Source: Ophelia neglecta
Lineage: Eukaryota
Assembly (NCBI GenBank): GCA_965285935.1
Contig: OZ260662.1
Location: 99,138,001 to 99,202,000 of the forward strand
DNA length: 64,000 nucleotides
Reading direction: 5' to 3'
Position numbers and translations under genes: made by a program. The notes under the pieces are model-generated. The model saw nothing but the letters and a program-made list of their open reading frames with translations. It did not search any database and had not been told where the DNA came from. Below, piece after piece: positions 11 through 59,832 of the stretch; positions within the stretch are counted from its first letter, which is position 1, and each line of letters begins with the position of its first letter.

Positions 11-174
11 TTATTTATCAACTTGTAACTTATTTCTTGCCAACACTTTACATAGCCCATTATGACACTTGTCGCAAGATATATTATTAACAGGGCATGT
101 GCAATAAAAGCCTTCGAATGTGTCAATGCAAGTTCCTCCATTCAAACATATCATACTGATACAAGCAATAATTT
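11..174 (-). CDS. Gene A EGF-like exon reading through to a stop
   Basis: Phase-1 acceptor; [29 protein letters not shown] resembles gene C exon 51751-51864; no GT at the expected donor, TAA at 11-13. Confidence 0.6.
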
Positions 175-3100
175 CTGTAAATAATGATAGACAATCAATG
201 AAACAAAAAGTAACTTTTAGAGGATAGTGAGCTTTAACACCCCACTATTAGCGTGATTTTAAGGAGTTGTATACGTGTGTACCGTCACGCTTGTAATAAG
301 TGTAAAAACTGTGTTTTTACGGATGAAAGACTTAATGAATGAAATAAAACTGGGTGAAACAGTTATATTGTTAAATAACTAATATTTATTCCAATTCTAC
401 GTGCTTTTCAATGGTATCTGATAACTTCATGATGTCCTGCGTCGGTTATCAAGGTTTTAGATTATAACAAAATATAAGTATGTTCAGAGATGACGTTGCT
501 TGGATCAATGTTACGAAGGCAGGGGTCAGGCGGTGCACCCGGGATACTACTCGTGTTTGACCTTAATGAGGCACAGTGTACAAAACGAGTAGGGGGTGGA
601 GCATACCGGCGTGTACATGCGACAGCCATTGTGGACGTTACATACGGCAATCGCAGGTATTTTGTAATTGTGATTAATACAATAGACTTGCATCATGACT
701 CAAACTAAGCTGCCTTCCCCGTTTGGGTCATCTAAAACGGCTGTCCTAGTAGACGGCGGATATCACCTGTGGAATATGCCCAAGTGCCACTTTATGTTTT
801 ACCACGCTCCATTTCCAAACACCAGACGATTACAAAGCAATCGACAGTTTCAATTATAAGTGGTTTTAACAAGCTGCAGAGGTGTTCGAAATCACGTATG
901 AGGGACCGACAGCATATCCGAGATGTATTAATATGTTAATACTAGTGAATATGAATATTTTTCATCAATTTGCAAGTTATTCCATTCTGGTTGCCATGCC
1001 AACGAGCACCTTGTAACTAGTCTAAGAGTGTTTTTATTAAGACGAACTAGAAACCTATTTTTTTAGCTTTTTAAATTATTATTTTGTAAATTCGTTAATC
1101 AATAAAACGATCCAACCATTGTTATCACAAAGCTTTATAAGGCTAAGCTAGGCAAGACTTAAACCGAGCTTCATTTTTAAGAAGTTTTACAAATTTGATT
1201 TGTAACTGTTAAGACTAAACTTAAAAATATAAAAGTAAGAAGACACGTAGTCTATTGAAACATGCTGCTATTTGTCTTTTTCTCTTTCAAATAACGTATC
1301 ATAGCTATTCAGTAACTAACTAGTTTCACAAAATGTGCAATGAAGCTTTTGGTACAATTACCGTATAATACTGTCATAGATTAATTTGTACTAAAGTGTG
1401 TTCATTCCTTAATATAACGTAAATAGACTCACCTCCCAATGTAGTGGTTTGAGTTGATGCTGGTGTAGGATTTGATGATATAGTTGTAGTACCAGGAGTT
1501 GGTGTTGGCGGTGTAGGGGAAGGAGTTGGTGTTGGCGGTGTAGGGGTAGGAGTTGGTGCTGGTGGTGTAGGGGTAGGAGTTGTTGTTGGTAGTGTAGGGG
1601 TAGGAGTTGGTGTTGGCGGTGTAGGGGTAGGAGTTGGTGCTGGTGGTGTAGGGGTAGGAGTTGTTGTTGGTGGTGTAGGGGTAGAAGTTAGTGATGGTGT
1701 AGGAGTTGATTGTATAGGTGTAGTGCCAGGAGTTTGTGTTGGCGGGGTAGGGGCAGGAGTTGGTGTTGTCGGTGTAGGTGTAGGAGTTGGTGGTGTAGGG
1801 GTAGGAGTTGTTGGTGGTGTAGGGGTAGGAGTTGGTGCTGGTGAAGGAGTTAATGGTATAGGTGTAGTGCCAGGAGTTGGTGTTGGCGGTGTAGGGGTAG
1901 GAGTTGGTGCTGGTGGTGTAGGGGTAGGAGTTGTTATTGGTGGCGTAGGGGTGGGAGTTAGTGATGGTGTAGGAGTTGATTGTATAGGTGTAGTGCCAGG
2001 AGTTTGTGTTGGCGGTGTAGGGGCAGGAGTTGGTGTTGTCGGTGTAGGTGTAGAAGTTGTTTGTATAGGTGTAGGGGTAGGAGTTGGTGTTGGTGCAGGA
2101 GTTGATGGTGTTGGTGTAGGGGTAGGAGTTGGTGTTGGCGGTTTAGGGGCAGAAGTTGATGTAGGAGTTGCTGGTGTGGTTGTAGGGGTAGGAGTTGGTG
2201 TAGTAGTTGATGGTATAGGCTTACTACCGGGTGTCGGTGTTGACGTTGTAGGGGTAGAAGTTGGTGCTTGTGTGGAAGAATTAGATGGTATAGGTGTAGT
2301 GGTCGTCGTGGGTCTAGGACCTTCCAGCATGACTTGCTCCGTATTAACGCAGCCGCCCAATTCCTGATGCGCAAACCCCGACTGTAAGCTGTCTCGAACA
2401 TTAACAACGCATCTCTCAACAAAAGGCAAGTCTTGCTTCTCTCGAACAGTGAGTATATAGGTAATGCGGAATCTGATGATAATGCTGCCTTGGCTGGAAT
2501 TGAAAACAGATCTTTAAGATTTTTATAATTGGTGCAGATAATTTTTTATACATTTAAACGGTATATAAATAACATTATGATTGATGATTAGCATGAACTT
2601 TCGTACCTGAATCTGATCACCTCGCATCCCCCGTAATCAAAAGTAGTACCTGACATCAATGTGACATCAATCTGAATATCATCAGCAATACAAAATGCTA
2701 TACTGGCATGTTAAAATCAAGTTTTCGTTTCACAAAGGCGTTTGACAAGGATTCGCATAAATGTGAGTTTCTTAAACAACACAGGTCAGAAACAACCGGA
2801 GCCGTTTGTCGTGGGTTAGTGATTGCCTAACTGATCGGTGGCAGCGGCGGATCTTTACTGGCGAGAGTCTTCTTATAAACACATTCCAGCAGGAGTTTCA
2901 TATGGTTCTATTCTTGTACGTCTCTAATATTTGGTCAATTTTAATGACATTGTTGGAGATATGTCCAGCAACATTCACCTATTTACCTCATTTTATCGCT
3001 CGTTTATCGTTTCCTGAGTTGTCAGCAATTGTGAACAACTCAATTATTTAGTCGAGTCCCGTCCCCGATACCTCTTCTATGGTAACACAAGATTACGTTT

Positions 3101-6100
3101 GAGATTGTCGGTATCATTACCTATGATGTGCATTAATTATTTACTAGAAATTTACACTATATTGTTGTCGTAAACCGTGTATGCTTAATTGTTTTACCGA
3201 TATTCGTTATGTAGCTGCTGTTCACTTCACCGGATTTTAGGCTCAACCTTATAGGTGACAATATCTTTGCTCATTTTTGCTCATCTTAGATTGACACAAA
3301 TTTTTATTATGGAGTCTTCAATTTCAATTTAATATTTATGACACCTTAAAACCTGAAAAACTAATTGTTAAATTGCCTATTTAATTCTCATTGGATTGCA
3401 TCTACGCTTGGTGCTGTTGGGTCGGCGTCTGTCATGCTTCATCTGCATTTGATGGGGCATGGCGGGCTTCGGTCTGGAGAGGCGGCGATGTGATCATATA
3501 TACATGCTGATGCCTGTGTTGATATTCGCGCTCACGCATATGACTATGTGTGCGTTGGGATTTTTGCGCGGGTGTGTGTGTATTTAGGTCTTTGAACAAA
3601 TACATGGCCTCGGCTAATTAATACTTCAGGCCGCCTGTCATCCTACCACTTCATCTCGTCCATTACATGCTGTTTTACCTAAAAGTCCGTATGTTGATAT
3701 GTTGGAACTAACCGTTTATAAGACGTAGGCTTTTGTAAGATCCAATATAGGAAAAATGAATAGGTTTAAACCAATCTGTGATATAAGGCTATCAATGAAC
3801 TTGAAAATCCTGGTATGTTTATGTACGTGGTTTCTTAACACAGGTTATTCTACATTGAAGTTTTGTATTATGTTGTTCATAGGAGTGTTCTTAATTGAGA
3901 GATGAGTTTCGTACTTTAAGGCAGGTATCAGTGTAGTTATACATTATGGATAAGATATACGTTTACCTCTTTGCAAAACCTTTCCTGGAGACTTCTGAAT
4001 TCGGCTGATTTCAAATTCTTGTATTGATTAAGAAATGGTTCACCAGAGCATTTCATTTCTCCGACCACTGTGAGAAAGTGAATAGTTCTATTTACGTTAC
4101 TATTGATAACGTAGTTATAGATAGAAAAGTTCAAACTCAGCGCTATCTAGTAAGGGAGGTTATAAGAATCTTCTGTAATTATTTTGCTTGGTACAATAGC
4201 TCTCTTTTAACTATGGTATACTGTCAAACGGTACTGAATTATCCATACAAAACCTAAACCTCGATGAAGGGGAAAACTATTGCCACAATATGTTTACCAA
4301 CACATCTCCTCACGTCTCTTTTACGCCATTCATTATACAAAAGGGACAGGAAACCAAACGTTCAGACTGTAAAACCTATACCTTAATTGGATCAATTTTG
4401 ATTGTCACGAAAGGCAGAGTTTGCTCTCCATAAAATTTCTCTTTAAGACCCTCTGTTTTACACATCACCATACCGTTTTCCCAGACCGCCGACTTTGACA
4501 AGGATTTTAGACATAGAGGAAACATCGTAACCTTGTGGTGCCTGTCTCGTTGATCATCAAGTCAAGGTGTGATACGTATGTGGACTACAAATTCGGGCAT
4601 TACTTCCAGACTATTTATTCACCATTAGTGCAAACGCCATGCATGGATTGGAGAGACGGAGTTTCCCACGTTGTCACATGACAGACAATTCCAGGCACAA
4701 TCCCCACATTTTGGCAATTGTGCGATGTTAAGAATTGAAATACTCACGATTTATGGCAGTCTTTTCCTCTGAAATAAAAATAAACATCGATATCAGGAAT
4801 ATTGGTGAATGAAAATTTTTCACGTTATAGGCATTGGCAAGCAGGTCTTAATTGTTGATAATTTATATAAATCTCCATCAATGTCTATAAGCTGACATCA
4901 ATTAACCGACCTCTGAAACGTAGCTGCCAAAGAAGCACCCCGAAAACCACCGATGACAGCACGACAATGATGATGAGTGACAGGCATAGTCCTTTTGGCG
5001 TAAAACACGTCCGTGGTATTCTTTTGCTTGTACTGTGATCATCGCGCCAGGACACACCTGGAGGTAACCGCTGTGACTGCGGGCCCAAGGTTGGCAAGTA
5101 GTAGTCAGGCTTGTTTGGTTGGTAGGCGGGGGTAAAAGCAGGCCTCATTAGGTACTGTGGAGGTGCACGCTTAACACCCACATCATCTTTCTGAAGCAAA
5201 GTATTGTCATACAGCAATTTTATTTTATTACCACGCATATAAAGATATAAAGTTCTCTTAAGTACAAAAATGTTATATCTGAAGGCTAGGTGATTGACGG
5301 CACGCTGTTGTCTATTGGTAATAAGTCTGGGCCTGTGCGCAATTCTCGTTTAGCCGGAAGTTTGCGGCAATTGTTACTTTATTTTGTCAGAAATTCTACA
5401 GGACACAGTGACACAGTTCCGTACAATAGACCTCTCTGGCAAAGGCAACCGAATAAGAACAATGCCGATGTGTTGTTTTCTGTATTGATTCGTATATGTT
5501 TGTTCCTTTCTTCTGCTTAGTACTCGGACCAAATTCCTCAACCTACCAAGTCGAAGGCGACACATTGAGTACCCAATACAACAAAAGGGACTCAGGGTTT
5601 AATCATTGCATTGATCAATAAGGGTGGGATTAAACGACGGAGGTGACTTCCCAGCAGTATGCACTTACATGTATCAGGGCGGGCAGACGCGGGCTTCAAA
5701 AGTCCAAACGTGTGCATAAATAGCCGTGAAATCGGAAAATTGGTAAAAAAATACTGAGTTTATTGGTGCCGGGACTAGCTTCCTCACATTCAGGCGATGA
5801 TTATATATATAATGGCCCCCTTAATCCCTATGATTTATAAAAAGAATTAGTACCGTAGACGTATTGTGAGTTATGGTTTTTAAATATGAGTAGTAACTTT
5901 AGATGGTTTTTGACGTATGGTTTATGAATATGAGTAGTTATTTAGGTGTATTGTGATATCTGATTTATCAACGACTTAATAAATTCTCATATACCTACTT
6001 GACTTTCATCGGCTTCATTCCAGCGCCACGATGGCAAAGTGTCAGATTTCAACCATAGTAGCTTTGAAGGGGGCTAAAGAAGTATGAATGAAACTCTGTT

Positions 6101-11177: not shown

Positions 11178-11178
11178 G

Positions 11179-25100: not shown

Positions 25101-28100
25101 ACTGGCCAGCTGGGCATTATAATATGCTCATCCGGGCCTCTCAGTTTAACCGACCAATGACATTTAACACACTGACTTACCCTTCAACATGAACAAATTA
25201 TAGATAAATCTTTGGCTCGTTAGTAAACGTTTTGGAAGAGAGAATATGCAATCAGTCCTTTGTTGTCATGGAAGCAGGGCAGATATTGTGTTTCTGTGTG
25301 TAAAAAATACCGTATTTTTATTGTCTGAATATAATTTTTACTCTTCGTTTTGGCTATGACTTATGGTTGTAAAAATATTACTTAGGCCTTTAGCGTTTTA
25401 ATAGTCTACAACACTTTTGTTACCTAAATCGTAACCTTTGGAACAAGCATACAGTTGAAACCTATACACGTGCAGTTTTATCGCCAGATACAAAACTTAG
25501 TCTTTTCTTACTATCTTAACAAGTATATTATAAATTGATATAATTTCTGATTAAAATATCACTGTAACCTAAGACCTTATTTAACATTTTTTGATGGAAA
25601 TTATGCTCATCTTTAACTTTTGCAAATGATAAAAATATTTGTTATGAATGTATTTGCTATGGTAACGAACATCCAAATACTCAGATGAGAGCCTACATAC
25701 AATCCCTTGTTTCTGAAAATGCAAACGATATAAATATATGTAGCTTTCAAATGATATACATCACTAAAGCTGTGCCCAAATAATTATCTAAGAAGTAAAC
25801 ATTCCGCTGAAGCCTCTTCTCATAGAATCTTGTCTCCACATGCAACATATTGTATTCTATTGGTTATTGAACAAGCTGACTTTAGTTATGCCAGTCTTCT
25901 CAAAAATCTCGAGGCAAGCTATCCTAGAATAACTAATAGGTTAATTATACTGATTAGGAATATTTTCCACCAATTTGTCAGTTATTAGATTCTGGTTCCC
26001 ATGCCAAAGATCTCATTATATTTAGAGTGCTTTTACCGAACCAGTAATCTATAATATTTTAATTTTGCAATTAATAATTTGTAAATTTATTAATCAATAG
26101 AACGCAAGTTAAACAAATAGGCATTTGTTTTTGCTATGGCGACGAGGATATCGTTTTTAATTCCTATGATCATAAGCCATTTATTTTTAGCGCAATGTTG
26201 ACTATTAATTTTCATATTCATACTAGGTATAGCATATTGTTAAAAAGGTTGTTATGTGGGTCTAGACTTTTCCAATTATAGGCAATATTTCAATCTTATT
26301 GATGCACGTACCAAATGTACATGGCATTTAAGCCATAACCATACCTTTTGGATGTAATACTTTTTTGGATGCTATGAAATGGCTTGTTCGACCTTTTAAT
26401 ATATATAATTTGTTCACTATAACTAAGATTTTATGGGTTATTAATGTTGTTGATATATCCAACTGTGCAGTTTCAAACTGTAGAGTATGTGTTCAGGTAA
26501 TTAATTGTGGGCTTGCTAATATGTTCACTTCTGCAATAAAAGTGCCGTTCGTAAAAATGGAAGAAAATATTATTTGAGCAGGTGAGCCGGATATGGTTTT
26601 CATGAAACGTACGTGTAATTTCGTATCAAATATCACATGGTATCATTGAATTATCTCAAGTTATCACAACCTCATTAGTATAATATGTATTAAATAGAAT
26701 ATGGAAATATCAGTCCGAATCAACTGGTTTAAAATGACGGAACTATACGATTGATAACAGAAGTCCTTTCTGATTGACCCTATCTAGCGAAAGGAAAGGA
26801 AAGTGGGCAAATGTTCTAGCGTCATACTTCCATAGGGTAGCAAGTTTCACAATGAAATTTTGTGTTTGCGTATATTCTAAGGCGTATATTAATGTTTGAT
26901 ACAAATAGAGAATATGTTGGAATTGTATTGAACAAGCTAAGATGTTTTATATAACTGGAAAGCTGAAAACCACAAACTAAAATTAATTTTAAAACTAAAT
27001 GATTAACCATATTTGTATGTATTGAATTTTTGAAAGGAAATACGTTGCGAGGGTAACCATGTAGGTTAACCCCCCCCCCCCCCCCCCGAAGCTTACCATC
27101 TTGAGCGTCATATTTGTGTCAACAAATCAGCAGGTATCGGAGGTTGGCGCTAATTGGCCTGTTCTACCAATGACGTAATAATGTAATAACGGCAATAGAA
27201 CTCGGATTCTCCTATTATTTAAGGTTGGTTGTAAAATGGCCCTGAAACCTTGTCAATACATGTAGTACGCCTAAAATGAGGCGTTTGTTAATCGAATCTA
27301 TACACGAGCTCACCTCCAGTGGTAGTGCTATGATCCCTTGTCTTGGTACTGGTAAGCCCTGATAACGGTGTAGTGATTGCATCGGTAGTCGATGTGGAGG
27401 TGGAAGTGGCTGTCGTTGAAGTAGTAGGATTTGCTGTCGTTGTAGTGGTAGTAGTTGATATCGGTGTGGTGGTAGGTTTGATTGTTGTTGTGGTAGGATC
27501 TGCTGTCGTTGTAGTGGTAGTAGTTGATATTGTTGTAGAGGTAGGTTTTGCTGTCGTTGTAGTGGTAATAGTGGCTGTCGATGTGGTTGTAGATGGTTCT
27601 GTCGTTGTGATGGTCGTTAATGCTTTCGTTGTAGTAGTAGTTGGTTCTGTCGTTGTAGTAGTAGTTGGTTCTGTCGTTGTAGTAGTAGTTGGTTCAGTCG
27701 TTGTAGTAGTAGTTGGTTCTGTCGTTGTAGTAGTAGTTGGTTCTGTCGTTGTAGTGGTAGTTGGTTCTGTCATTGTACTGGTATTTGGTGCTTTTGCTGT
27801 AGTGGTAGTTGGTACTGTCGTTGAAGTGGTAGGTATGGCTGTTGTTGTTGCAGTTGGTAGTGTGGTTATAGTAGTATTTGGTACTATCGTTGTAGTGGTA
27901 GGTATGGCTGTTGCTGTAGTGGTAGTTGGTGAGGTCGCTTTAGTAGTAGTAATTGCTCCGGTTATTGAGGTAGTGGTAGCTGTAGTGGTAGCTTGTGCAG
28001 TCGTTGTAGGGATAGTTAGTTCTGGTTTTATAGTTGCAGTTGGTTCTTTCATCGTAGTGGTGTATTGTTCTGTCTTCATCATGGTAGGTGGTGTTTTCGG

Positions 28101-29723
28101 CGTTGTGGTGGGTGGTGCTTTCGTTGTAGTGCTGGTGTTTGCTGTCGTTGTTGTGCTAGTGGGGGCAGTCTTTGTAGTGGTACCATGTGCTGTCGTTGTA
28201 GTGGTCGTGGGTGCTGACGTTGTAGTAGTATGGTCTGCTCTCCTGACTGGATCGCGTATTCGGCCTCTACCAAACTGTTCACGCATTCGTCCCGATGTCG
28301 CTGACCATTGAATTATCTGACGAACGATGGCTATAAGATTGCTAACAAATTCCAAGTCATTCCTTTTTAGACCAGAAATTATGAATGTAATCCGGTATAT
28401 GACGATGATACTGCCTTCGCTAAATAAGATAAAAAAAAGTATTGTTGTATCTATTCAAATATCTTATCTTCTGCCAATAAACTTTAAGACCAAGAAAAAA
28501 CTTAGTTTGGAAATAAAAAACAGCCAATACCTGAAACTTATCACGTGACATCCACCATAATCCAGTGTACTGTTGGCACTGAATGATAGTTCCATCTAAC
28601 ACAAAACGGGTAGTAATATTAAATAGTACTATGGGTAATCGTGGAATTCGTTTTAATGCATCTAAGTCATTGTCTCCTGCTATACCTACTTCTAAATTTA
28701 TTAGTGTGATTACTGATGTCAACCAATACCAGCGGCTGTAAGTGTGCTATCGGATTCTTTAATATGTATGTATATCTTGCATTTCTAACCTTTCATTTTT
28801 TTTCGGACATGTTTTCACCGCCGTTCAAGGACTATAGCTTAAATGTTTTCTTTCTTACCTCCTTGCAAAATCGTTCTTGGAGACTTTTAAAGTCGGCTGA
28901 TTTCATATCCGCGTATTGACTCCGAAAAGGTTGATCCAGCAGTTCCATTTCTCCAACCACTGTGAAGAGAAATGATAAAGATAATAAACCTTTAGTCCGT
29001 CATTCATTTCAAGGCAATGCACACAACTTTATAAATCGAGGTGATTAATTATATCAAACTCACGATTCAGCACACTGTTTGTCTCTGCAAAAAGAATAAA
29101 CATGTGATTTAGAGAATCATTCAATTTATTTGTCATTTAGGAGAATAATATAACTTCTTGTAACATTATCAACGGTATGTGTCTAAACTACATTAAAATC
29201 TAATCGAGAAGTGGCGGCAAGTTCACGAGTAATTCTGACAATTCGTAAAGGAAGATACTTAAATAATCGGACCTTTAAAATGCAAATGCCATATAAGCAC
29301 ACCAATTCCAGCTAAAAACAAAACAATTGTTGCTAATGAGAAGAAGAAGATTTTCCTCGGCATGACAGACATCCTGCGGTTTCTTTTTTCTGGATCCCGT
29401 TCAAAACGTTTTCTTCGCGTCTGTTTTTACCCCGATTAAGTCTTTCAAACCGCTGGTTAGGGTATGTATCGTAGGTGGGAAGATAATGGTAAGGCATGTG
29501 CGGATGATAGGCAGGAGCAATAACCGGCGGCATGACGTAAGGTGGTGGTGCAGGCTCGGAACCGACCGAGTCACTCTGAAAACGTATGTTCCACAAATAT
29601 TGACACTTTCTACCTTAGGGATAAAATGTGTCGTAAAATATCCACTGCCGTGTTATTTTTTCCTTACAAAGTTTATGAAACATAGCTGAAACGATGTTTT
29701 TGGGGCTTTATGTCCAGGTATGT

Positions 29724-29765
<42 letters not shown>

Positions 29766-34338: not shown

Positions 34339-34356
34339 TATTAGTTTATATTCGTA

Positions 34357-38275: not shown

Positions 38276-38941
38276 CTAATTAGCAGCTTTCTTCAGGTCT
38301 AGCCTGTAGTGGCGATTAATATCGTCGATAGCCGTCCTGACGAATTTCAGAGCCTCCTTTTGAGATTGCACACTAAAGGTGCGCTTGTAGCAATCTACAA
38401 TGGCGTTGAACCTTCTTTTCTGGGGGGAGATGGACGGGCGACCTCTGCCCATCACATTACGGTCTGCAGCCCGCTCGGCACAGGAGTACATAGAGCGGGC
38501 CAGCTGCGACACGAAGACCCGGGCAGTGCAGTGATCCAAGATGAGCTTCCTCACTAGATCCGGATCTGCCTCGTAGTTTGGCTGAAAGACGTCCTGTTCA
38601 TTTACACATCGTGCGTCCTCGGGCCGGACAGGTCTGGAGGGCTGATGGGCGGCCTGGGCCGGCGCAGGGGGCTGGACGTGGGGAAGTGCCTCGGGCTGTC
38701 CCCCCTGTACCGGCAGTGGTTGGGGGGGAACCTCGATGTCGCGTGCCCGGAGAGCCGCACGCAGGCGCTGGATCTCCTGTTGTTGGTTTGCCACGGTCTG
38801 CTCCAGCAGATCGACACGGGCCATCTTCCTCTCCAGAAGATCCAGCCTTTCTGAGGTATTGGGCATCTGCTGCTGTTTTCTGGTGGGAAGGGGGATGTCA
38901 GGGAGGGAATCCTCATCGTCGGTCACGACACGTCCATTTGC
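38276..38941 (-). CDS. Coiled-coil plus BEN-domain terminal exon, probably transposon-derived
   Basis: GC-rich open exon after a ttttttttgtagcag acceptor; VFVSQLARSMYS..ER..NVMGRGRPSISP..FNAIV..F..VRTAIDDINR fits the BEN helical pattern. Confidence 0.65.
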   Translation of the reverse strand, partial: ANGRVVTDDEDSLPDIPLPTRKQQQMPNTSERLDLLERKMARVDLLEQTVANQQQEIQRLRAALRARDIEVPPQPLPVQGGQPEALPHVQPPAPAQAAHQPSRPVRPEDARCVNEQDVFQPNYEADPDLVRKLILDHCTARVFVSQLARSMYSCAERAADRNVMGRGRPSISPQKRRFNAIVDCYKRTFSVQSQKEALKFVRTAIDDINRHYRLDLKKAAN

Positions 38942-47671: not shown

Positions 47672-47874
47672 TTAAGGAGCCAAAGTTGTTGCTATAGCAC
47701 AGGATGGTTTATCGGAACAAGGTTGATCAGGATCAGGATCCGGAAGGAGGTCACCTGCGCACGGTGTGGAGCCATAGTGAGTAGTGCCTCCGCACCATAT
47801 GTATTGCGTACACTCACTTGGGTGTGGAAGGTATGTACTACCCGAACGTGTCACCCCATTACATGTGTTCAGAT
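47672..47874 (-). CDS. Gene C terminal CBM14 exon
   Basis: [26 protein letters not shown] then TAA. Confidence 0.8.
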
Positions 47875-50800
47875 CTGAAAGAAAATATTGCATATTGGAT
47901 AATGCTAGAAATTTATATTTTGAAGCCTAAGAAAGATAATTAAAGTATTGCAATGATATTTTAGTCATTCATATACGATTTTTAAAAATTCTTTAACCCT
48001 AATGAGACCACCCACCCAAACCCAAATATCTCAACACCAACCGAAACCTTTACCCAGACCAGTCCTAATCGTAAGGACACAGCATCATAAGCAATAAATG
48101 CTGCCCAAAACCCCGAACATGTTTCATTCCAAAAGGCATTATGTGTTACAGCTAGTGACCTCCCTCTCAGGAACATGCTAGTAGAGGTACATGCATAACT
48201 GTTCTAAAGATTGGATCCACTGTTATGTAATCAATGGTCCCTTCCTTCTCTTGCTTTTGGCACTTCTCTGAATGGATATGTGCCAGCTGTTATTTTGCGC
48301 CATTGTCAGCTCCCAACTGCTGTGCGAGCTCTAAAGAGCTAACACAGAATAGTGGCAGCCACCAACATCAACGTGATTCACAGTTTTAGGATTATAAGTG
48401 GCAGTCCCATTATACGTACTGCTGACTTACGCGTCCAAGCCTCCAAATCATTGTGTACCACTCTCATAGACATTATCTTTTCCCCATGGCTATTAAATTT
48501 ATTTTTGTTGTTTCTCCATGGTTGCCTGCTGTCTCTTATTTATCTCTAAACTATCAAGCTTTGTGGTAACTTCGCACAGTTTCAAAGGCCACTATGATAG
48601 CTGCAACTATCCCTATGGTTATGTAGTATCAAGTTTGTCAGCACTAAACCTGGCTGTCTTACCAGCTTCTTGGTCAGCTGTAGGTCCATGTGTCAACGTG
48701 ACATGGTCCGGTGATTTCTCCATGTCATTGCCGAGTTTAGCAATGACCTGATCTCCTTGTTGTAGTCAGTCATAATTAATTTTTCAAAACAATAGCTAGC
48801 TTCTTTACACTTTCTAACGTTATCTCTCTTATTCCCGGTTCAAACAAATTAGAGTTCTTTTCTTTGTTCCTATTTTGGCCGGAAAACAACTCGCCAGGTT
48901 ACAGATTTACCAATTTTTAGCGAGCCCCACTATGACTTCTATTTTCAGTTAACTTTGAATAAAGTGGCCATGAGGGTTATGTGCTTTATGTATTTGCTTG
49001 CATCGGTCAAAATCAAAACAAACTTCAAACGAAAGAATGTGGGAAATACTAACCAATCCTACAGTCGGGCTGAACTGCTTCGTTGGCGCATGGGCACTGA
49101 TATCCACAATCACATCTGTAATTGATTCCATCGGGGAAGCACGTTCCGCCGTTTTTACAAGGATTCGACGTACAAGGGGTTATTTCTAAAATAACATCAA
49201 CAAAAATTATATAGCTTTAATAGCGGTCATGGTAAAAGACGTAATGCAGAATGCGGAATGGAATTGGAAATTTTTGGTGCCTTCTTCCAGACATATTCCA
49301 CCCATTGGTTCAAAAATCTTAATACTAGACATAGCAGTTCAACTTAATTTCATCGTTTCTTTTCTATTGTGGTCGGATAACAGCTCGCCAGGTAACCGAT
49401 TTATCAAAATTTGGCGAGGCTCATTATATTATGACCATTTCTGTGTCTGAGCTTTGAATACAGTAGTCTTGAGTACAGTGACGTAGGCAAATCACCGTGG
49501 AATCATCATTTTTGTGTTGTCCAGAAAAGAAAGCAAGGGACTAGGCAGAAAGCCCATATATCTCGATTCGGGTATTGCTCTTTAAAATGCAGCTTCTGCC
49601 AACATGACCGGTGCGAACTAGCTCTTCTGTTCGCAGATAAATAAGGCTGTTTAATGGATTTTCAGCGCTTTCAATGAGTGTATTACCGAGCATATTTTAA
49701 CATGATTTCAATTGCATAATGTCTTGTGCATTGTAAGCGGTCATCTTCTATAGGTAGGAGTGGATATTCCGTTGGCAGAGAAGGCAACTTCTAACAATTC
49801 AATTGGGTTATCAATATAAATACACATTTCATAAAATGTTAGGCAAACAAGACAAGATTTCCTAAAGTGCATGTTCACAACTGGACCTAGGTTTTGGACA
49901 GGGATGCTCGGCTTGGGCTGCAAATGCCAGGAATAAACGTTAGTGATGATAAAACTGGACATGCGCGCCTAAACCTGATTTTTTTTCAAGGGCTGCGCTT
50001 TAATAAAAAACTTTGGCAGTGCGGTTGGGTTTCCAAAATTAGCCAAAGTAAGGGCGCTGGAAACCAAATAGTCGTCCGCAGGGGTTCGATGAAGGGAGTA
50101 GTTCATCTATTGGCCAGAGTGCAGCGTAAATACCTAGGCAATTTTGAGTAAAGCTTTGATTGCACAACATGTAGTGATTGTGAACTCGATTCTCTGGGAG
50201 CGCAGTTGACATTATACATGGTGCCAATGCAAACATGGCAATTTCATGTGCCTCATGGGCAAAAACACAGCATTGCAGTCATGGCCCCGGTTAAACACCA
50301 ACGACATCAGCCCGATTAGATCTGACATAAGTTATCTGTGTCTGCTAATATCTGTCATTTCGTATTTTATCGTTCCGACTTTTCCGTATTCCGCACCGTA
50401 TTCTGCGTTACCTTTTTTATCATGACAGATTTAATGTGTGTGAAGGCACACATCGCAAAAAAAAACTTAATTCCTAGTCAATTTCACATAATTAGATTAT
50501 CATAATATTATATTCTTACCTGTTTCACACCTTAATCCAATAAATCCATTGCCACAGGAACAGACGAAAGTGCCAGTAGCGTCATTGCATAAACCTCCGT
50601 TAAAACATGTCTCGTTTGTACAAAGAATTTTTTCTAAGAACAAATTATTATATACTGATTGATTTTGAAAAATATGACTCACATTGATTGCTGTTTTTAA
50701 TTATATTAGTTTTGCGACACTGTAACGTCTAATTTACGCTAGAATGTTTAAGTGCAACTTGCGAACTCGGTAACGTTGTCGCCTCATGTTCAAAAACACG

Positions 50801-53800
50801 AATGCCGTAATTCTAAGCTCACCTATTTCACAATTGGTTCCGGTATAACCATCTAAGCAGTCACAGGTAAATCCGCCAGATATATTCCTACAGGTCCCGT
50901 TGTTTTCGCAAACTTCACTGCTGCAATCTATCAAATGACATGAGTATAAGTTAACAGAATATAAGATCTGTCAGAACTACCAATAAGCAGATTAACTATG
51001 GTAAGATGTATCCACCTTTTATTATATTGTATGTTGCGCAGGCAACGTTTATTTCATCAGTACATGTAGGATGCATGACATTAGACGGATCAAATACTTG
51101 TCCATTTGTACAAGGGCGTTGTGGGTATTTCCTCTTAGATGCGCAGCGGATGAACTCCGAACAATTGTTTGGCTCAGGATAGTAGCCATCATCTCTCCAT
51201 GAACAAGATGCGATATCTTCAAAGATAGATGTGCAGAATGCACCAAAATATCAAGAAAATGTATTTACAAAAGTCAGTTCTGAATGTTGTTATTTTATGC
51301 ATTACAAGCATATTAGCAATTAAACAGATTCGTTACCGTTTTCACACTTCGGTTGAACCGCCTGGTTTGCACATTCACACTTTGCACATATACAATAAGA
51401 AGTGGATGGTCCGTCCTGCACACAGGTACCTCCATTCTGACATGGATTGGGATCGCACGGATGGTATTCTAATGAAATGAAAACACGTGTTTAGCACGTA
51501 CCCTTGCATATTTAGTTGCACAAGCAAACCAAAACGTTGTTAAACAGAGAATCGTACTTTTATATTTGATGCTGTTCTCTGATAAGGTGGCATAGTTTTA
51601 TTAATGCAGGTTACGTTAAATTTGTAAAATAGAAAATCTTAATATTGGTTTAACCCAATCACGGTATGAAAGAAGTCTACACATTGAATACAACGTAGAA
51701 TATGGTTTCTATCATTTGGTGTCATATCAGTAGAATACGAATTTACTTACCTGATTCGCATTGGGATCCGGTATATTCAACTGGGCATGTACAATGAAAG
51801 CCATTGATAGTATCGTTGCAAGTTCCACCATGTAAGCACGGGCTTTCGATACAGGGAATTATTTCTGCAAATCACGACATTACTTCAGTACGATTTGATA
51901 TATTGACAACAGTGCCCCAGTGATTTGCCTTCATTCTCATTGCCAGTGATATGTCTTTATTCTCATTGCCAGTGATATGCCTTTATTCTCATTGCCAGTG
52001 ATATGCCTTTATTCTCATTGCCAGTGATATGCCTTTATTCTCATTGCCAGTGATATGCCTTTATACTCATTGCCAGTGATATGTCTTTATACTCATTGCC
52101 AGTGATATGCCTTCATTCTCATTGCCAGTGATATGCCTTTATTCTCATTGCCAGTGATATGCCTTTATACTCATTGCCAGTGATATGTCTTTATATTCAT
52201 TGCCAGTGATATGTCTTTATTCTCAGTCCCAGTCATATGTCTTTATTCTCATTGCAGGTGGTATGCATTTATTATATATCTACTTGTAATTACATCGTAA
52301 ATTGATTTATATCACCGATTTCACATTGTATAAACGTCGCGTGTCAGAAGATAAGTCATACTAAATCCAATTCCGACTGACAAAATCGTGATAAACAATC
52401 AAATCCACATGCATGGATATTTTTTTACTTTACCTGAGGAAAAGTTAGCTTATCTATATAAAGACCATATATTTCTTGAAGCATTCATCAAACGCTTTCT
52501 CGTGAATTAGCCAGCATTTTCCCGAAAACGATTTGGAAATGGTATTGTAGCTCGACATTTTCTTTTCTTGTCGGGTTCGCAATACGCATATTCTCTTTTT
52601 ACTTGTGGAATTTGGGTTAACTATTATTTTGCCTGCGGGTAGATTTTCCTGTCGATTCAGCAGATTTTGATGGACTATAGTTTAATGACTTTGATTTGTC
52701 TTTAGGGTATGCAGTCCCTTTTTAAAGTGTTAACTTAAACGATCAATTAGTTTTGTTTTATGCGTAGAATAAACAAAGTCACAAATACGGTATAAGCAAA
52801 TAATACACGTGATAGAATGGGATTATATAATAGCAATAAGCTGGAAAGCACAACTTTCTTTTGATATTTGACTACGATAAGAATAAATTGATCTAGCTGA
52901 CTGACTACTTAGCATTCCCCCCTCCCTCATCACCCTCCGCCGAATGGGAACACTTATGTTCTAATATGGCGCCGCGTCGCGCTTTCGCCATGCCAACCAA
53001 CCAGGATAGATTGTTTTCAAAAAAGCCACTCATATGATTTTTTCACATAATGTACCCATTTGACTGAAAATTAATCGTCAGAAACGCTACCGTTTTGCGA
53101 TGTTCGCATATCTTAATGTGATGATGTTACTTCACTGTTATTCACGACCGAAAACACAACTAAGTTTGTAATCTTGTCTGGCAATATCATGCAAAAAGTA
53201 GTCTTGTGGGGGATGGGGGGGGGGGGAATGTTGCACTCAGAGGACTCAAAAATCTTTTACACTGGCATGGGACTCAAACCCAATATATCAAATCGATTAA
53301 AATAATCTTAAAGAAGGGACATGACATTTTGTAATTAGTGTAAGATATTTACAAATAAATAAAGTCAAGAATCACTGGCATAATTTTAACATCAAATGCG
53401 GTTCAAAGGTTCTGACACATTTATGATTAGGGTATAATGTGAATATCGTATACAAAATTGAAACACGAATGTCAATTGGCTACTTCACATTTTCTACAAG
53501 CGTTGGAAAATACAAATCATTTTTACACATAAGATAATTCATTCAAAGTCATCGAAATTATGCTATGATAATAGAATTGTGAATCACTTTGAACATAACT
53601 TATTGAACGGGTTGTGTGTTCAAATGTAACTGGCCTATGGAAACTGTCAATGGAGCTAGTTGTTTGCCGGGGCCGCGCTTTGCATAGCAACATCGGACCG
53701 AGGTCACGGTTTTATGCCAATTATTAATGAAGGATACAATAAATCACAGTTTCATTGATTATCTACCTGTTTCACAAAGATTCCCCGTGTAATGCGCAGC

Positions 53801-56800
53801 ACAATGGCATACGTATCCGGCTATTGTATTCTGACATGTTGCTCCATTCGAGCAGTTTACATCGCTACAAAACTCCGGCAATTCTGTTAAAAAAGACGTC
53901 AGGTCTATTCATGCATGATGAAGGAAGAGTGGGTTATAACATTCAATGATGCGACATAGTGAGCCAATTTCAACTTCTACTAATATGATAACAAAATAGA
54001 ATGACTTAACCTGTTGCACATGCAACTTCCGATGGGGCGAAGCATATCACATTATTTGTAGAATTGTAGCCAGGGTTAAACACTAAGTTAGCGGGATTAC
54101 AGGTCACTTCGGTTTGCCCATTGTCGTAACACCTTAGAGACTTGTGACAGTCTGATGGAGACGGAAAATATGCGTTTCCGGTCACGTTCCTCCAAAGACA
54201 AGAAGATAAATCTGAAATTAGAAAATATAAATGATTGATATCAACAAACGCCTAACAGGATGTTTCCTGAAATGTAACGGTCATATGCAGTTTTAAAATT
54301 TGTTGGCATTTCTTCATACAAATGATTATTCATATAACCAATTACTAGCGAATAGAAGTTATAAGCTTTCTGAAGGTTTATTTTACAATATTAAGTTCGC
54401 GAGTTTTAAATTCCCATTGCCAGTTGACGCGTATATATTATCAGCGTTTGCTGTGAAACATCGCACCAGGCACATCTTCGTAAATGAGACAAATGACACC
54501 CATCAGTGTATACATTCACATTTTGGCGAGGTTTCATTTTCCCAGGACGAATTAACGCTTTTATCCCGGTAGGCCATTAAACTGAACCAGTTCCTGTTGC
54601 GTTGATCGACCTATTAACAGAATGTTCCCTTCCAAATCAAGTTTTGTTTAATTAACAAAATAAATTAGGTAGATCACACCTATCCAGATAACATAACGTG
54701 TTATTTACCATTCTCGCAGTTTGGACCTGCTTGCAGATTGGCACATTGGCATTTAGCACATACACATGTGTACTCCCCTATACCGTCAATACACGTACCT
54801 CCATTTTGACAAGGTGTGCTAGCACACTCATCAATATCTAAATATTGTTTAATCTGAATTAACATTGGTGCAGTAAAATGAGAAAATATATTTGAAATCA
54901 ATATCACATATATTAATGGACTTTGTTGCTGTGGTATAGTGTTCATTTTATTACTCTTTACTGTTGAAATCGTAGAAACATGTGTATCCTTAAGGATACA
55001 CATCTCCTTTTAGGAGAAAATTCTGTTTGTTTTGAACTTATTATAATACGAATCTGTTAAATGTCTTACTCAATTCACAATATGACTCAGTGTAACCTTT
55101 GGTACAGTTACAAACAAAACCATCGGCCTCGTCTTCACATAAACCGTCATGCTGACACGTGACATTCTCACAGTTTAAACGTACTGAAACAAAAAACATA
55201 GCAACCAAGCCAACGTTATTGGAGAATGCCGTTGATATAGAATTCATTGCAAGTGCCCTGCCTTCATCGGTAGATCGAGCTAGTAAATGTCATAAGGCAA
55301 TGTCAGGCACTCTATCGATTGGTGTGCAACGCTCATTGAATGTTACCAGTAAGTATTAATGGTAAAGGCATACAGGGCATGCCCATTATAACAATGATAT
55401 GGATTTATCTGGCTTTGATTTACTTTGATTTAAAGAAAATGGACAATAGTGACAAGCATATTCATACTCTCTTATTATAAGTCACTATTAGAGCATGAAA
55501 GGGATGTTAAAGGAGCATTGTTTTTAAATGCACCCACGTTGGTACGTACACATAGTTTAGGCTTTGGTTTAGCTAGGACCTTTGCTTTGACCCCGTTGCC
55601 CATGGTGCCAGTAGATTTAACTAGAGTCACGCCTCTAATATAGAAGTATGGGAAGTCCCTTGGGAGAATAGTACGTTCTAGATACAGATGCTTTATTCTG
55701 TCAACACTTTTGTTTTGTGGTGGCAGCCAACATACAACAAATCGTTTATTTCAAAAAGAGGGGCATGGCATCTTGGATGTGCTGCACGCCGTAATAGAAC
55801 ACACAACGGACAAAAAGCTCAGAGTTCGATACAAAAAAGCAACACAAATGAAAGGAAGTGTTTGCTCTTCTCTTGATATGTCACCGCCCCTGTCAGATAT
55901 TGATACCACCTGAATCCTTGCGCTTTAATAATAATTTGCACTGAGAAAAGTATGATATTTGAATTATCATACGATATAAATTTGACTTTTGGTTTGTTTT
56001 TTACCCTCACACCTCACACGTTTCTTCTCAGAAAACCCAAGTAACATTGGTGCCGATTGTGAATGCACTGTTCACTGATACATTACACCCATTACCACAA
56101 TGACCGGGTGTACACAAGTCAAGATATAAGCTACATCAGAAGATGAAAGCAGGAGTTTTGCGGTAAACTGGCGGTCCTCATTATACTTTCTCGACATAAT
56201 AAGAAAATGAGAATGAATGTAGTTAATATGGCTATGTGGCTTTAGCTAAGCTGGAGCAGCACCGACGGAGGGGTTCCTCCACAAGTCTACGCCATATTCA
56301 TATTCGTGTTAACAAATCAGCAGGTATAGGGGGTTGGCGCTAACTGGCCTGTTCTACCAATGACGGAATAATGTAATAACGGCAATAGAACTCGGATTCT
56401 CCTATTATTTTAGGTTGGTTGTAAAATGGCCCTGAAACCTTATCAATACATGTAGTACACTTTAAATGAGGCGCTTTAGAAGCTATATACGAGCTCACCT
56501 CCATTGGTAGTACTATGATCCCTTGTCGTGATACTGGTTAGCCCTGATATCGGTGTAGTGAAGTCATCGGTAGTCGATGTGGTGGTGGAAGTGGCCGTCG
56601 TTGAAGTTGTAGGATTTGCTGTCGTTGTAGTGCTAGTAGTTGCTATCGTTGTTGTGGTAGGTTTGATTGTTGTTGTGGTAGGATCTGCTGTAGTTGTAGT
56701 GGTAGTAGTTGCTATTGTTGTTGTGGTAGGTGTGATTGTTGTTGTGGTAGGATCTGCTGTCGTTGTAGTGGGAGTAGTTGATTTTGTTGTAGAGGTAGGT

Positions 56801-59800
56801 CTGGCTGTCATTGTTGTGGTTATAGTGGCTGTCGATGTGGTTGTAGATGGTTCTGTCGTTGTAGTGATCGTTGATGCTTTCGTTGTAGTGGTAGTTGGTG
56901 CTATCGTTGTGGTAGTAGTTGGTGCTACCGTTGTAATGGTAGTTGGTTCTTGCGTTGTAGTGGTAGTTGGTTGCTTCGTTGTAGTGGTAGTTGGTTCTGT
57001 CGTTGTAGTGGTAGTTGGTTCTGTCGTTGTAGTGGTAGTTGGTTCTGTCGTTGTAGTGGTAGTTGGTTCTGTCGTTGTAGTGATAGTTGGTTCTGTCGTT
57101 GTAGTGGTAGTTGGTTCTTGCGTTGTAGTGGTAGTTGGTTCTGTCGTTGTAGTGGTAGTTGGTTCTGTCGTTGTAGTGGTAGTTGGTTCTGTCGTTGTAG
57201 TGGTAGTTGGTCCTGTCGTTGTAGTGGTAGTTGGTTCTGTCGTTGTAGTGATAGTTGGTTCTGTCGTTGTAGTGGTAGTTGGTTCTTGCGTTGTAGTGGT
57301 AGTTGGTTCTGTCGTTGTAGTGGTAGTTGGTTCTGTCGTTGTAGTGGTAGTTGGTACTATCGTTGTAGTGGTAGTTGGTTCTTGCGTTGTAGTGGTAGTT
57401 GGTTGTTTCGTTGTAGTGGTAGTTGGTTTTTGCGTTTTAGTGGTAGTTGGTTCTGTCGTTGTAGTGGTAGTTGGTACTATCGTTGTAGTGGTAGGTATGG
57501 CTGTTGTTGTAGTTGGTAGTGTGGTTATAGTAGTAGTTGGTACTATCGTTGTAGTGGTAGGTATAGCTGTTGTTGTAGTTGGTAGTGTGGTTATAGTGGT
57601 AGTTGGTACTATCGTTGTAGTGGTAGGTATAGCTGTTGTTGTAGTTGGTAGTGTGGTTATAGTAGTAGTTGGTGCCGTAGTTGTAGTGGTAGTTGGTACT
57701 ATCGTTGTAGTGGTAGGTATGGCTGCTGCTATAGTGGTAGTTGGTGATGTCGCTTTAATGGTAGTAGTTGCTATCGTAATTGAGGTAGTGGTCGCTGTCA
57801 TTGTAGTGGTAGCTGGTGCAGTCGTTGTAGCGGTAGTTAGTTCTGGCTTTGTATTTGCAGTTGGTTCTTTCATCGTAGTGGTGTATTGTTCTGTCTTCAT
57901 CATGGTAGGTGGTGTTTTCGGCGTTATGGTGGGTGGTGCTTTCGTTGTAGTGGTACTTTTTGCTATCGTTGTTGTGCTAGTGGGTGCAGTCTTTGTAGTG
58001 GTACTATGAGCTGTCTTTGTTATGGACGTGGGTGCTGACGTTGTAGTAGTATGGTCTGCTCTTCTGACTGGATCGCGTATTCGGCCTCTACCAAATTGTT
58101 CACGCATTCCTCCCGATGTTGCTGACCATTGACTTATTTGACGAACGCTGACTATAAGATTGCTAACAAATTCCAAGTCATTCCTTTTTGGACCAGGAAT
58201 TATGAATGTAATCTGGTATATGACGATGATACTGCCTTCGCTAAATAAGATAAAAAACTATTGTTGCATCTATTCCAATATCTTATCTTCTGTCAATAAA
58301 CTTTAAGACCAACATAAAACTTAGTTTGGAAATAAAAAACAACATATACCTGAAACTTATCACCTGACATCCACCATAATCCAGTGTACTGTTGGCACTG
58401 AATGATAGTTCCATCTAACAAAAAACGTGTAGTAATATATAGTACTATGGGTAAACTAGGAATTCGTTTTAATGCATCTAATTCATTGTCTCCTGCTATA
58501 CCTACTTCTAAATATATTAGTGTGTTTACTGATGTCAACCAATACCAGCGGCTTCTCTGTTGTAAGTGTATTATCGGATTTTTTAAAATGTATGTATATC
58601 TTGCATTTCTCATCTTTCATTTTTTTTCGGACATGTTTTCACCGCCGTTCAAGGACTATAGCTTCAATGTTTTCTTTCTTACCTCCTTGCAAAATCGTTC
58701 TTGGAGACTTTTAAACTCGGCTGATTTCATATCCGCGTATTGAGTCCTAAACGGTTGATCCAGCAGCTCTATTTCTCCCACCACTATGAAGAGAAATGAT
58801 AAAGATAATTAACCTTTAGTCCGTCATTCATTTCCAGTCAATGCACACAACTTTATAAATCGAGTTGATTAATTATATCAAACTCACGATCCAGCACACT
58901 GTTTGTCTCTGCAATAAGGATAAACATGTGATTGAGAGAATCATTCAATTTATTTGTCATTTAGGAGAATAATATAACTTCTTGTAACATTATCAACGGT
59001 ATGTGTCTAAACTCCATTAAAATCTAATCGACAAGTGGCGGCAAGTTCACGAGTAATTCTGACAATTCGTAAAGGAAGATACTTAAATAGACGGACCTCT
59101 AAAATGCAAATGCCAAATAAGCACACCAATACCAGCGAAAAACAAAGCAATTGTTGCTAATGAGAAGAAGAAGATATTCCTCGGCATGAAAGACATCCTG
59201 CGGCTTCTTTTTCCTGGATCCCGCTTCAAAACGTTTTCTTCGCGTCTGTTTTTACCCCTATTAAGTCCGTTAAACCGCTGGTTTGGGTATCTATCGTAGG
59301 TGGGTAGGTAAAAGTCAGGCATGTGCGGATGATAGGCAGGAGCAATAACCGGTGGCATGACGTAAGATGGTGGTGCAGGTTCGGAACCGACCGAGTCACT
59401 CTGAAATAGTATGAACCACAAATATTGACATTTTCTTCCATAGGGGTTAAACATGTAAAACTATCCAATGCCATGTAATTTTTATTGCAAAGTTTATGAA
59501 ACATAGCTGAAACGAAGTTTTTCTAGATTTATGTCCAGGTCTGTCTTATATATATATATATATATATTCTCCATTGAATTTTTTTTTTCAAAAATAAGCA
59601 TTCGGTTTATTTGTATTCATAATTAAAATATCTGATTGTAAACGCCTTTTAACTCAGTATTAATTTAGCAGGACAGGGAAGCCAAATTGAAGTAATTGTC
59701 GATGTTATGGGAATGGGGCCTGGCGAACGAACAATAATTTCCGTTTTATATACACACCTGACTGTTGTTGACATCATGCCATTGCCACGAACGCAAAGTG

Positions 59801-59832
59801 TCGGATGTCCTCCAGATTCGCTTTCCAAAGGG
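47672..59832 (-). CDS. Gene C: intact type II SEA-mucin with 7 EGF and 3 CBM14 domains, at least 1245 aa; first exon not located
   Basis: Exons 59758-59832, 59097-59400, 58888-58908, 58683-58783, 58350-58414, 56499-58240, 55070-55183, 54709-54837, 54011-54211, 53767-53883, 51751-51864, 51337-51468, 51016-51216, 50823-50927, 50520-50633, 47672-47874 total 3738 nt in frame. Confidence 0.87.
50520..50633 (-). CDS. Gene C EGF exon
   Basis: [34 protein letters not shown]. Confidence 0.85.
50823..50927 (-). CDS. Gene C EGF exon
   Basis: [34 protein letters not shown]. Confidence 0.85.
51016..51216 (-). CDS. Gene C CBM14 exon
   Basis: [33 protein letters not shown]; 201 nt. Confidence 0.85.
51337..51468 (-). 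CDS. Gene C 8-Cys EGF exon
   Basis: [27 protein letters not shown]. Confidence 0.85.
51751..51864 (-). CDS. Gene C EGF exon
   Basis: [34 protein letters not shown]. Confidence 0.85.
51918..52270. repeat. Intronic 26-bp minisatellite (~13 copies)
   Basis: Unit tcattgccagtgatatgcctttattc head to tail with no spacers. Confidence 0.95.
53767..53883 (-). CDS. Gene C EGF exon
   Basis: [34 protein letters not shown]. Confidence 0.85.
54011..54211 (-). CDS. Gene C CBM14 exon
   Basis: [36 protein letters not shown]; 201 nt. Confidence 0.85.
54709..54837 (-). CDS. Gene C calcium-binding-type 8-Cys EGF exon
   Basis: [37 protein letters not shown]. Confidence 0.88.
55070..55183 (-). CDS. Gene C EGF exon
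   Basis: [34 protein letters not shown]. Confidence 0.85.
56499..58240 (-). CDS. Gene C exon: SEA C-half plus expanded Thr-rich mucin (24-bp VNTR)
   Basis: [13 protein letters not shown] then many TTTTTEPT units. Confidence 0.9.
58350..58783 (-). CDS. Gene C SEA exons 58683-58783 and 58350-58414
   Basis: 101 and 65 nt, near identical to B. Confidence 0.85.
59097..59400 (-). CDS. Gene C cytoplasmic tail plus TM exon
   Basis: [13 protein letters not shown]...[38 protein letters not shown]. Confidence 0.88.

Follow-up and report, generated by a model that had tools for sequence, protein, structure and literature searches.

Membrane mucins of the MUC1 type (MUC1 and MUC3/12/13/17) carry a tandem-repeat, O-glycosylated stalk and a juxtamembrane SEA domain with a G/S site, where a slash here and below marks a cut bond or a splice junction, and they are the setting of the shed-ectodomain idea; EGF modules also occur in MUC3/12/13/17. 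They are type I proteins, made with a signal peptide and a C-terminal tail, and vertebrate mucins are not known to carry chitin-binding modules. Here, we analysed 64,000 nucleotides (nt) of the Ophelia neglecta genome (contig OZ260662.1, positions 99,138,001 to 99,202,000 of assembly GCA_965285935.1; hereafter the window), in which three tandem paralogs, genes A, B and C, appear to encode proteins of the mirrored order, with a PPxY-containing tail, a single hydrophobic helix, a SEA-like module, a Thr/Pro stalk and, in B and C, distal heads of EGF and chitin-binding CBM14 modules. We give about an even chance to the reading that these are lineage-restricted animal type II membrane mucins, including both a self-cleaving SEA-like module and use as a breakable chitin tether.

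The N-terminal half of this order is that of the SEA-stem serine proteases of the type II transmembrane class (TTSPs; enteropeptidase, matriptase, HAT/DESC), which have an N-terminal tail, a signal anchor and a SEA-type module after the helix with the G/S[VI][VI]x motif (PMC2958558). Unlike TTSPs, the cluster proteins have no protease domain and carry a mucin stalk and EGF/CBM14 heads instead, and no sequence similarity to TTSPs was detected in a profile search with the tail/anchor exon. Agrin is composed of SEA, Ser/Thr-rich glycosylated regions, EGF, follistatin-like and laminin-G domains. Its transmembrane form, TM-agrin, is a type II protein with a SEA domain and without a protease (PMC7570499), and the cluster resembles it in these respects as well as in its Ser/Thr-rich glycosylated regions and EGF modules. 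Past the stalk, however, the cluster proteins contain only EGF and CBM14, whereas agrin has follistatin-like and laminin-G domains and is not known to have CBM14.

By analogy, the closest functional analogue of the proposed tether would be MUP-4/MUA-3 of C. elegans, in which EGF repeats and SEA tie the apical membrane to the cuticle; MUP-4 connects epidermis and cuticle, and its loss detaches the cuticle (PMC2150763). In MUP-4/MUA-3 the helix follows the extracellular domains, a vWFA domain is present and a filaggrin-like tail binds intermediate filaments, whereas the cluster tail has only PPxY; moreover, these proteins attach to a collagenous cuticle and have neither CBM14 nor a mucin stalk. 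Six-cysteine CBM14 modules next to Thr/Pro mucin stretches are shared with peritrophins and invertebrate intestinal mucins. Peritrophins are secreted by means of a cleaved signal peptide and are not known to have a SEA domain, EGF array, helix or cytoplasmic tail. The group III beetle chitinase CHT7 is, like the cluster proteins, type II anchored by its N-terminus without a cleaved signal peptide and carries a cuticle-facing C-terminal CBM14 (PMC5891080), but it is an enzyme with two GH18 domains, in place of which the cluster has a SEA-like module, a mucin stalk and EGF modules.

Each element of the architecture has a precedent in TTSPs, TM-agrin, CHT7, MUP-4/MUA-3 or the peritrophin-type mucins, and what looks new is their combination and the mirror-image order, itself a reshuffling of common phase-1 modules. 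A preliminary description of this DNA had not recognised the architecture as that of a named family, and this agrees with the sources searched, which yielded no database relative and no paper that combines SEA with CBM14 or describes the architecture. The contrast that it drew with known proteins was overstated, given TM-agrin (PMC7570499), CHT7 (PMC5891080) and MUP-4 (PMC2150763).

Gene models and membrane topology

The relevant coding sequence is confined to the minus strand, where the three paralogs first noticed in the preliminary description lie in tandem within positions 11-59832. Gene C occupies about 59.8 to 47.7 kilobases (kb) and gene B about 29.9 to 19.0 kb, while gene A starts at about 6.1 kb and continues past position 1, where it is cut by the window edge. 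In all three, a 5' module is followed on the same strand, at a distance of 1.2-2.4 kb, by EGF/CBM14 cassette exons. Every junction of the three models is canonical GT-AG and the phase chain is consistent throughout (0>1, 1>0, 0>2, 2>1, then 1>1 eleven times); because both regularities hold along the whole chain, the arrangement is more than chance. There are no runs of N in the window. The work with Pfam, PDB profiles and structure prediction on the spliced models was carried out exon by exon, on single exons, and the results below are to be read with that scope. The exons of the 5' modules are as follows.

59097..59400, minus strand: gene C exon for the tail and signal anchor (304 nt, phase 0>1), encoding APPSY and then a hydrophobic helix; acceptor tttcag/AGTGAC, donor AGAG/gtccgt
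58683..58783, minus strand: gene C SEA-like exon 1, 101 nt, phase 1>0
58350..58414, minus strand: gene C SEA-like exon 2 of 65 nt (phase 0>2), with ISF and a split AG/ at its end
56499..58240, minus strand: gene C SEA-like exon 3 (C/GAA GGC AGT, reading S-E-G-S-I-I-V) and a 513-residue Thr-rich stalk; donor GGAG/gtgagc
29273..29575, minus strand: gene B tail and anchor exon, 303 nt, with a 1-bp (base pair) deletion near 29400 relative to C, which puts the PPPY tail and the helix in different frames
28859..28959, minus strand: gene B SEA-like exon 1, 101 nt
28531..28595, minus strand: gene B SEA-like exon 2, 65 nt
27314..28419, minus strand: gene B SEA-like exon 3 and a 305-residue Thr-rich stalk, phase-1 donor
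4911..5190, minus strand: gene A exon for the tail and anchor (280 nt, phase 0>1), encoding APPQY and then a hydrophobic helix
3967..4067, minus strand: gene A SEA-like exon 1, 101 nt
2607..2671, minus strand: gene A SEA-like exon 2, 65 nt
1433..2493, minus strand: gene A SEA-like exon 3 (S-Q-G-S-I-I-I) and a 291-residue Pro/Thr stalk, phase-1 donor

In the tail exon, PPxY is invariant, reading APPSY in gene C, APPPY in gene B and APPQY in gene A, and P-A-Y-x-P and P-D-(F/Y)-Y-L-P-T after it are also conserved; the exon then encodes the sole hydrophobic helix, which lies ahead of the SEA-like module. There is one such segment per gene, of 19-23 residues with a mean Kyte-Doolittle hydropathy of 2.4-2.95, starting at about residue 68-76 of the exon. 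Four to six Lys/Arg residues are found among the 15 residues on its N-terminal side, and the net charge on its C-terminal side is +1 to +2. Hydropathy analysis of the C-termini of B and C, which consist of CBM14 modules, showed no hydrophobic segment. A type II layout with a cytosolic N-terminus is supported, since the positive charge lies N-terminal to a single helix that begins some 70-75 residues into the exon, PPxY requires cytosolic WW partners, the disulfide-rich EGF/CBM14 modules and the O-glycosylated stalk must be extracellular, and no C-terminal hydrophobic segment is present. The PPxY tail, the single signal anchor and the inverted topology of the preliminary description are in this way all retained.

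The SEA-like module, stalk and heads

The SEA-like module begins 3 residues past the helix and continues into the Thr/Pro stalk inside one exon. It comprises about 120 residues split over three exons that have the same lengths and phases in A, B and C, namely 101 nt (1>0), 65 nt (0>2) and a long exon entered in phase 2, which contribute pieces of 33, 21 and about 60 residues, respectively. Within the first, 19 of the 33 residues are invariant among the three genes, and the protein identity between A and C across the three exons is 61%, about 50% and 35%. The string F-S-(E/Q)-G-S-I-I spans the exon 2/3 junction and exists only upon splicing, because the codon of its first Ser is split AG/C in all three genes. 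It agrees with the autoproteolysis motif G/S[VI][VI]x that SEA domains have in the hairpin of strands 2 and 3, documented as GSVVV (mucins), GSVIV (enteropeptidase) and GSVIA (matriptase) (PMC2958558), reading G-S-I-I-V in B and C and G-S-I-I-I in A, so that cleavage is predicted. G-S-I-I lies about 55 residues into the module, preceded by an aromatic-rich strand (DYGGC-V-I-x-F-S) and followed by a hydrophobic one, and together with its flanking positions it is invariant despite the 35% identity of A and C over exon 3. In SEA domains that are cleaved, the halves remain associated and force is needed to part them (PMC10556640). Based on motif and layout, we regard SEA identity as probable. Where the preliminary description spoke of a SEA domain keeping FS(Q/E)GSII, the string is confirmed at a conserved exon junction in three genes, but the domain itself is unrecognised by Pfam and PDB profiles on single exons.

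The stalk shares the long exon with the third piece of the module and its region is free of cysteine. It measures 291 residues in A (86% Thr, Ser and Pro), 305 in B and 513 in C, with Thr, Ser and Pro making up 71-86% across the genes, and Tandem Repeats Finder resolved it into 27-bp and 126-bp units in A, a 24-bp unit repeated about 35 times in B and a 24-bp unit repeated about 61 times in C, as the earlier claim of a Thr/Pro stalk had anticipated. Each stalk exon closes with the same 9-nt phase-1 donor, GGAGGTGAG (GGAG/GTGAG). Open reading frames (ORFs) on the plus strand across the stalks were set aside as antisense repeat artefacts.

Downstream of the stalk, the following cassette exons were identified.

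47675..55183, minus strand: gene C, 11 phase-1 cassette exons, from Pfam, splice phases and comparison with B; full-codon spans in the next three lines
55071-55181 EGF; 54710-54835 EGF-variant; 54012-54209 CBM14 (C cassettes 1-3)
53768-53881 EGF; 51752-51862 EGF; 51338-51466 EGF-variant; 51017-51214 CBM14 (C cassettes 4-7)
50824-50925 EGF; 50521-50631 EGF; 49055-49183 EGF-variant; 47675-47872 CBM14, then stop (C cassettes 8-11)
18984..24919, minus strand: gene B, 11 phase-1 cassette exons ordered as in C; full-codon spans in the next three lines
24807-24917 EGF; 23760-23885 EGF-variant; 23303-23521 CBM14 (B cassettes 1-3)
23061-23174 EGF; 22820-22933 EGF; 21726-21851 EGF-variant; 21284-21478 CBM14 (B cassettes 4-7)
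20918-21031 EGF; 20473-20583 EGF; 19313-19441 EGF-variant; 18984-19193 CBM14, then stop (B cassettes 8-11)
53..172, minus strand: gene A first cassette exon, EGF-like (Pfam EGF 28.8 bits, phase-1 acceptor and donor, alignment)

The distal arrays of B and C each hold eight EGF-type and three six-cysteine CBM14 (peritrophin-A) modules in an identical order (EGF, EGF-variant, CBM14, EGF, EGF, EGF-variant, CBM14, EGF, EGF, EGF-variant, CBM14), and all 22 of their exons are of phase 1>1 with pyrimidine-rich acceptors. Pfam EGF matched all 17 EGF-type exons scanned, 12 of them with scores that reached the gathering cutoff; for the C exon at 51752-51862, the assignment to EGF comes from its cysteine pattern only. 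Before each CBM14 stands a variant with eight cysteines, which fits the EGF model to about position 25 and whose tail after the fourth cysteine reads C-x-C-A-x-C-x-C-A-N-x(6-7)-C; to our knowledge, this is not a named subtype. Between B and C, the cassettes share 30-71% protein identity and all cysteines are kept, while silent sites are saturated (proportion of synonymous differences, pS, 0.80) relative to replacement sites (pN 0.43); the retained cysteines and the lower pN point to constraint, which supports the gene models.

Pfam CBM_14 matched all six CBM14 exons, four above the cutoff of 22.1 bits (22.3, 38.2, 26.7 and 34.9 bits) and two below it (15.0 and 17.2), and the six cysteines align in every one. 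A profile built from the six exons reached solved chitin-binding domains in the PDB down to E 8e-13. An AlphaFold2 (AF2) model of one of the exons had a predicted local distance difference test score (pLDDT) of 78.6, and the 12 best Foldseek matches to it in the PDB were all chitin-binding domains of the CBM14 class, with template modelling (TM) scores of about 0.55-0.60; matches of the model were to the CBM14 domain of CHIT1, Blo t 12, Avr4 with chitin hexasaccharide, Der p 23, tachycitin and EHEP. The identification of the heads as CBM14 is supported by sequence and fold, and chitin binding is predicted from it, in line with the chitin-binding heads first described. In B and C the stop codon comes directly after the last CBM14 domain, inside its exon, with no domain past it; Trypsin had no Pfam match in any ORF scanned and vWFA had none in the Pfam scans of ORFs and exons, so the statement that no protease is present was correct. 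That B and C end in EGF/CBM14 cassettes was likewise borne out, with exactly 11 exons each matching Pfam EGF and CBM_14 models. The two have full arrays, but they are not alone in having cassettes, since A too enters an EGF-like exon before the window ends.

Over the end of the last CBM14 exon of B, an 85-bp unit occurs twice at 18862-19033 with 98% identity; B's last 16 codons and stop are therefore repeated directly downstream.

Gene starts and neighbouring elements

Upstream of the tail exon, only one block is common to A and to B/C (tblastn E 3.5e-7). It lies about 350-900 bp away, with an ATG at the same aligned position in the three genes.

59749..59832, minus strand: gene C conserved 5' block, which may be a first exon or a promoter, ATG at 59777 (tblastn and alignment)
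29790..29870, minus strand: gene B conserved 5' block, ATG at 29812 (alignment)
5990..6073, minus strand: gene A conserved 5' block, ATG at 6018 (tblastn and alignment)

The block could be a coding first exon or, equally, a core promoter or 5' untranslated element. Its best-conserved part, GACACTTTGC..TCGTGGC, directly precedes the shared ATG. The weaker of two donors in the block, GTCA(G/A)G in phase 0, is compatible with all three genes and adds 5 residues, and the stronger, CAG/GT in phase 2 and 5 bases on, suits B and C if the acceptor is shifted but meets a stop in A. Both start models add only 5-7 polar residues, and neither contains a signal peptide. Two in-exon ATGs, at 59454 in C and at 5238 in A, are improbable as starts; the stretch from them to the acceptor is unconserved and is closed by a stop in B.

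The remaining features of the window include a decayed copy of the cassettes and several mobile elements.

12820..13446, minus strand: decayed EGF-variant/CBM14/EGF copy between B and A (tblastn E 5e-8, 1e-19 and 3e-9; Pfam CBM_14 25.9 bits)
31610-35853 and 42074-46170, minus strand: two non-LTR (long terminal repeat) retrotransposons of the LINE (long interspersed nuclear element) type between B and C (Pfam RVT_1, Exo_endo_phos, zf-RVT)
465-699 and 22156-22350, minus strand: dispersed repeat with near-identical translated stretches in an A intron and a B intron, probably a small mobile element

The decayed copy is nearest to C cassette exons 6-8 and has an in-frame stop and several replaced cysteines. 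In both LINEs, the ORFs for endonuclease and reverse transcriptase are open. An extra ORF of 498 residues without a Pfam match lies upstream in the first LINE, whose reverse transcriptase, the sole one searched, has best database relatives that are 48-49% identical and mostly metagenomic. A 222-residue open frame at 38279-38944 on the minus strand, also without a Pfam match, falls in a locally GC-richer patch and is overlapped by ORFs in other frames and on the opposite strand. Within an intron of gene C, a 26-bp minisatellite occupies 51917-52273 (13.7 copies, 92% identity). No match was obtained in a Pfam scan of the remaining ORFs of either strand or in an Rfam scan of the window.

Proposed function and competing explanations

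The combination of SEA-like module, stalk and heads is known here, so far, from DNA sequence alone, and the simplest function that we infer from it is that of a breakable tie that fastens an epithelial surface to a matrix containing chitin. In such a mechanism, the protein would be inserted with its tail in the cytosol and the SEA-like module would cleave itself at G/S while folding, its halves being held non-covalently. The O-glycosylated stalk would extend the CBM14 heads, which would bind chitin fibres of the apical matrix and so tie the cell surface to the chitinous layer by a link that may give way at the SEA seam when loaded. The module's second half would then be shed together with stalk and heads, while tail, helix and the module's first half would stay in the membrane as a stub. 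The PPxY tail may recruit WW-domain proteins, most simply ubiquitin ligases of the Nedd4 type, and these would set surface turnover.

Several observations, gathered in this and the following paragraph, weigh against this proposal. The 5' module had no homolog in a word-indexed collection of 5.8 billion proteins, queried with the exon 3 region of C (candidates of 326-1038 residues) and with that of A (208-663 residues), and a profile of the tail/anchor exon gave no matches of any length among 1.84 billion representatives; the protein collections seem to be without this animal and its close relatives, because even the LINE reverse transcriptase finds nothing closer than the identity given above. 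Pfam SEA (PF01390) did not match any of the single exons of A, B and C at E values up to 10, profiles of the exon 1 and exon 3 alignments returned chance matches only from the PDB, and the AF2 model of exon 3 alone was poor (pLDDT 58.6, one helix). Together with the fact that many true SEA domains are uncleaved and that TMPRSS6 is without the common motif (PMC2958558), these results leave room for a somewhat unlikely alternative, in which the juxtamembrane module is not a self-cleaving SEA domain, G-S-I-I is incidental and the proteins are permanent anchors or are shed by proteases. However, the misses are expected and say little, because the domain is cut into pieces too short to score exon by exon, while the motif is exactly G/S[VI][VI]x, is flanked by strands in a module placed directly after the helix as in TTSPs, and has stayed invariant between paralogs that have otherwise diverged over that exon. 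The join between stalk and cassettes and the first exon are, for their part, inferred from phase logic and the repeated arrangement, and the two candidate donors of the 5' block are not both compatible with all three genes. In addition, the 5' halves of B and C are 92-98% identical with their introns, and 88-98% when about 1.3 kb upstream is counted as well, with exons no more alike than introns, whereas the cassettes have diverged: 27108-30698 is similar to 56298-60962, 18984-24919 and 47675-55183 are unalignable by blastn, and the similarity breaks about 200 bp past the stalk donor. The two halves therefore differ in history, which would suit a pair of genes at each locus, one for a short SEA-like mucin of type II that stops soon past its stalk and one for a secreted EGF/CBM14 protein, their apparent fusion being an artefact of reading neighbours as one, as would the stop that each stalk ORF hits 8-20 codons beyond the donor. 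We consider such a split quite unlikely. Between stalk and cassettes, A has no candidate signal-peptide exon, C has a single weak one and B has three, none of them conserved; the most signal-like, an 18-codon mini-ORF with a weak phase-1 GT in a B intron (26956-27010, minus strand), is without a counterpart in A and C and is the only hint of an independent cassette start. Splicing of the stalk exon to the cassettes is favoured, because the phase-1 donor is kept in all three paralogs, the diverged A included, the first cassette exon has a phase-1 acceptor in every gene, no conserved signal-peptide exon intervenes and the adjacency recurs three times. The mosaic of B and C suggests that the genes duplicated long ago and that gene conversion (or replacement) has recently affected their 5' half alone, a history that accounts for it equally well. 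The tail exon of B also lacks one G after ...GTTTTGAA, so that the frame shifts and stops before the helix, and this gap is either a true pseudogenising lesion or an assembly error. Alongside it, the dead relic at 12820-13446, the LINE insertions between B and C and the B/C 5' exons conserved no better than introns fit a cluster in decay, whose copies would be pseudogenes or disused and whose architecture would have no present function. This is very unlikely in our judgement: C is open throughout, A is intact as far as the window shows and B is broken, as assembled, in its tail exon, while all 15 C exons, the other 14 B exons and the five visible A exons are open with intact splice sites, all cysteines in the 22 cassette exons are kept despite saturation at silent sites, and the relic gives a picture of genuine decay in this DNA.

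The function assigned to the heads is also exposed to doubt, in that the best PDB sequence match of the CBM14 profile (8in3) is a polyphenol-binding CBM14-type protein and CBM14 folds can bind other ligands. With the architecture as modelled, the main alternative function is that of a receptor or releasable decoy for foreign, chitin-bearing particles such as fungi, food or parasites, which we regard as unlikely. SEA cell-surface mucins are described as releasable decoys (PMC6491460), CBM14 modules are found in immune and allergen proteins, and recognition genes typically show tandem duplication and heads that diverge fast. Yet nothing in the sequence separates self from foreign chitin, and no signalling domain is present beyond PPxY. 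A long shot, in our estimate, is that the proteins are force-gated sensors of the chitin matrix, in which tension would part the SEA halves and the stub would signal through PPxY to WW proteins of the Nedd4 or YAP/Yorkie type. If so, they would perform mechanotransduction in the style of MUC1 and Notch, in mirror image, and would inform the secreting epithelium about the state of its chitin layer.

How epithelia hold on to, or sense, the chitin layers that they secrete has been worked out for few proteins of arthropods and nematodes. If confirmed, the breakable tie proposed here would provide a simple, testable candidate for the link between membrane and chitin in another lineage. The proteins would also represent a natural mirror image of MUC1, and would allow us to ask whether SEA cleavage and force-dependent shedding depend on orientation. 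Subject to the same confirmation, the cluster illustrates how phase-1 exon cassettes and local gene conversion may build new surface proteins.

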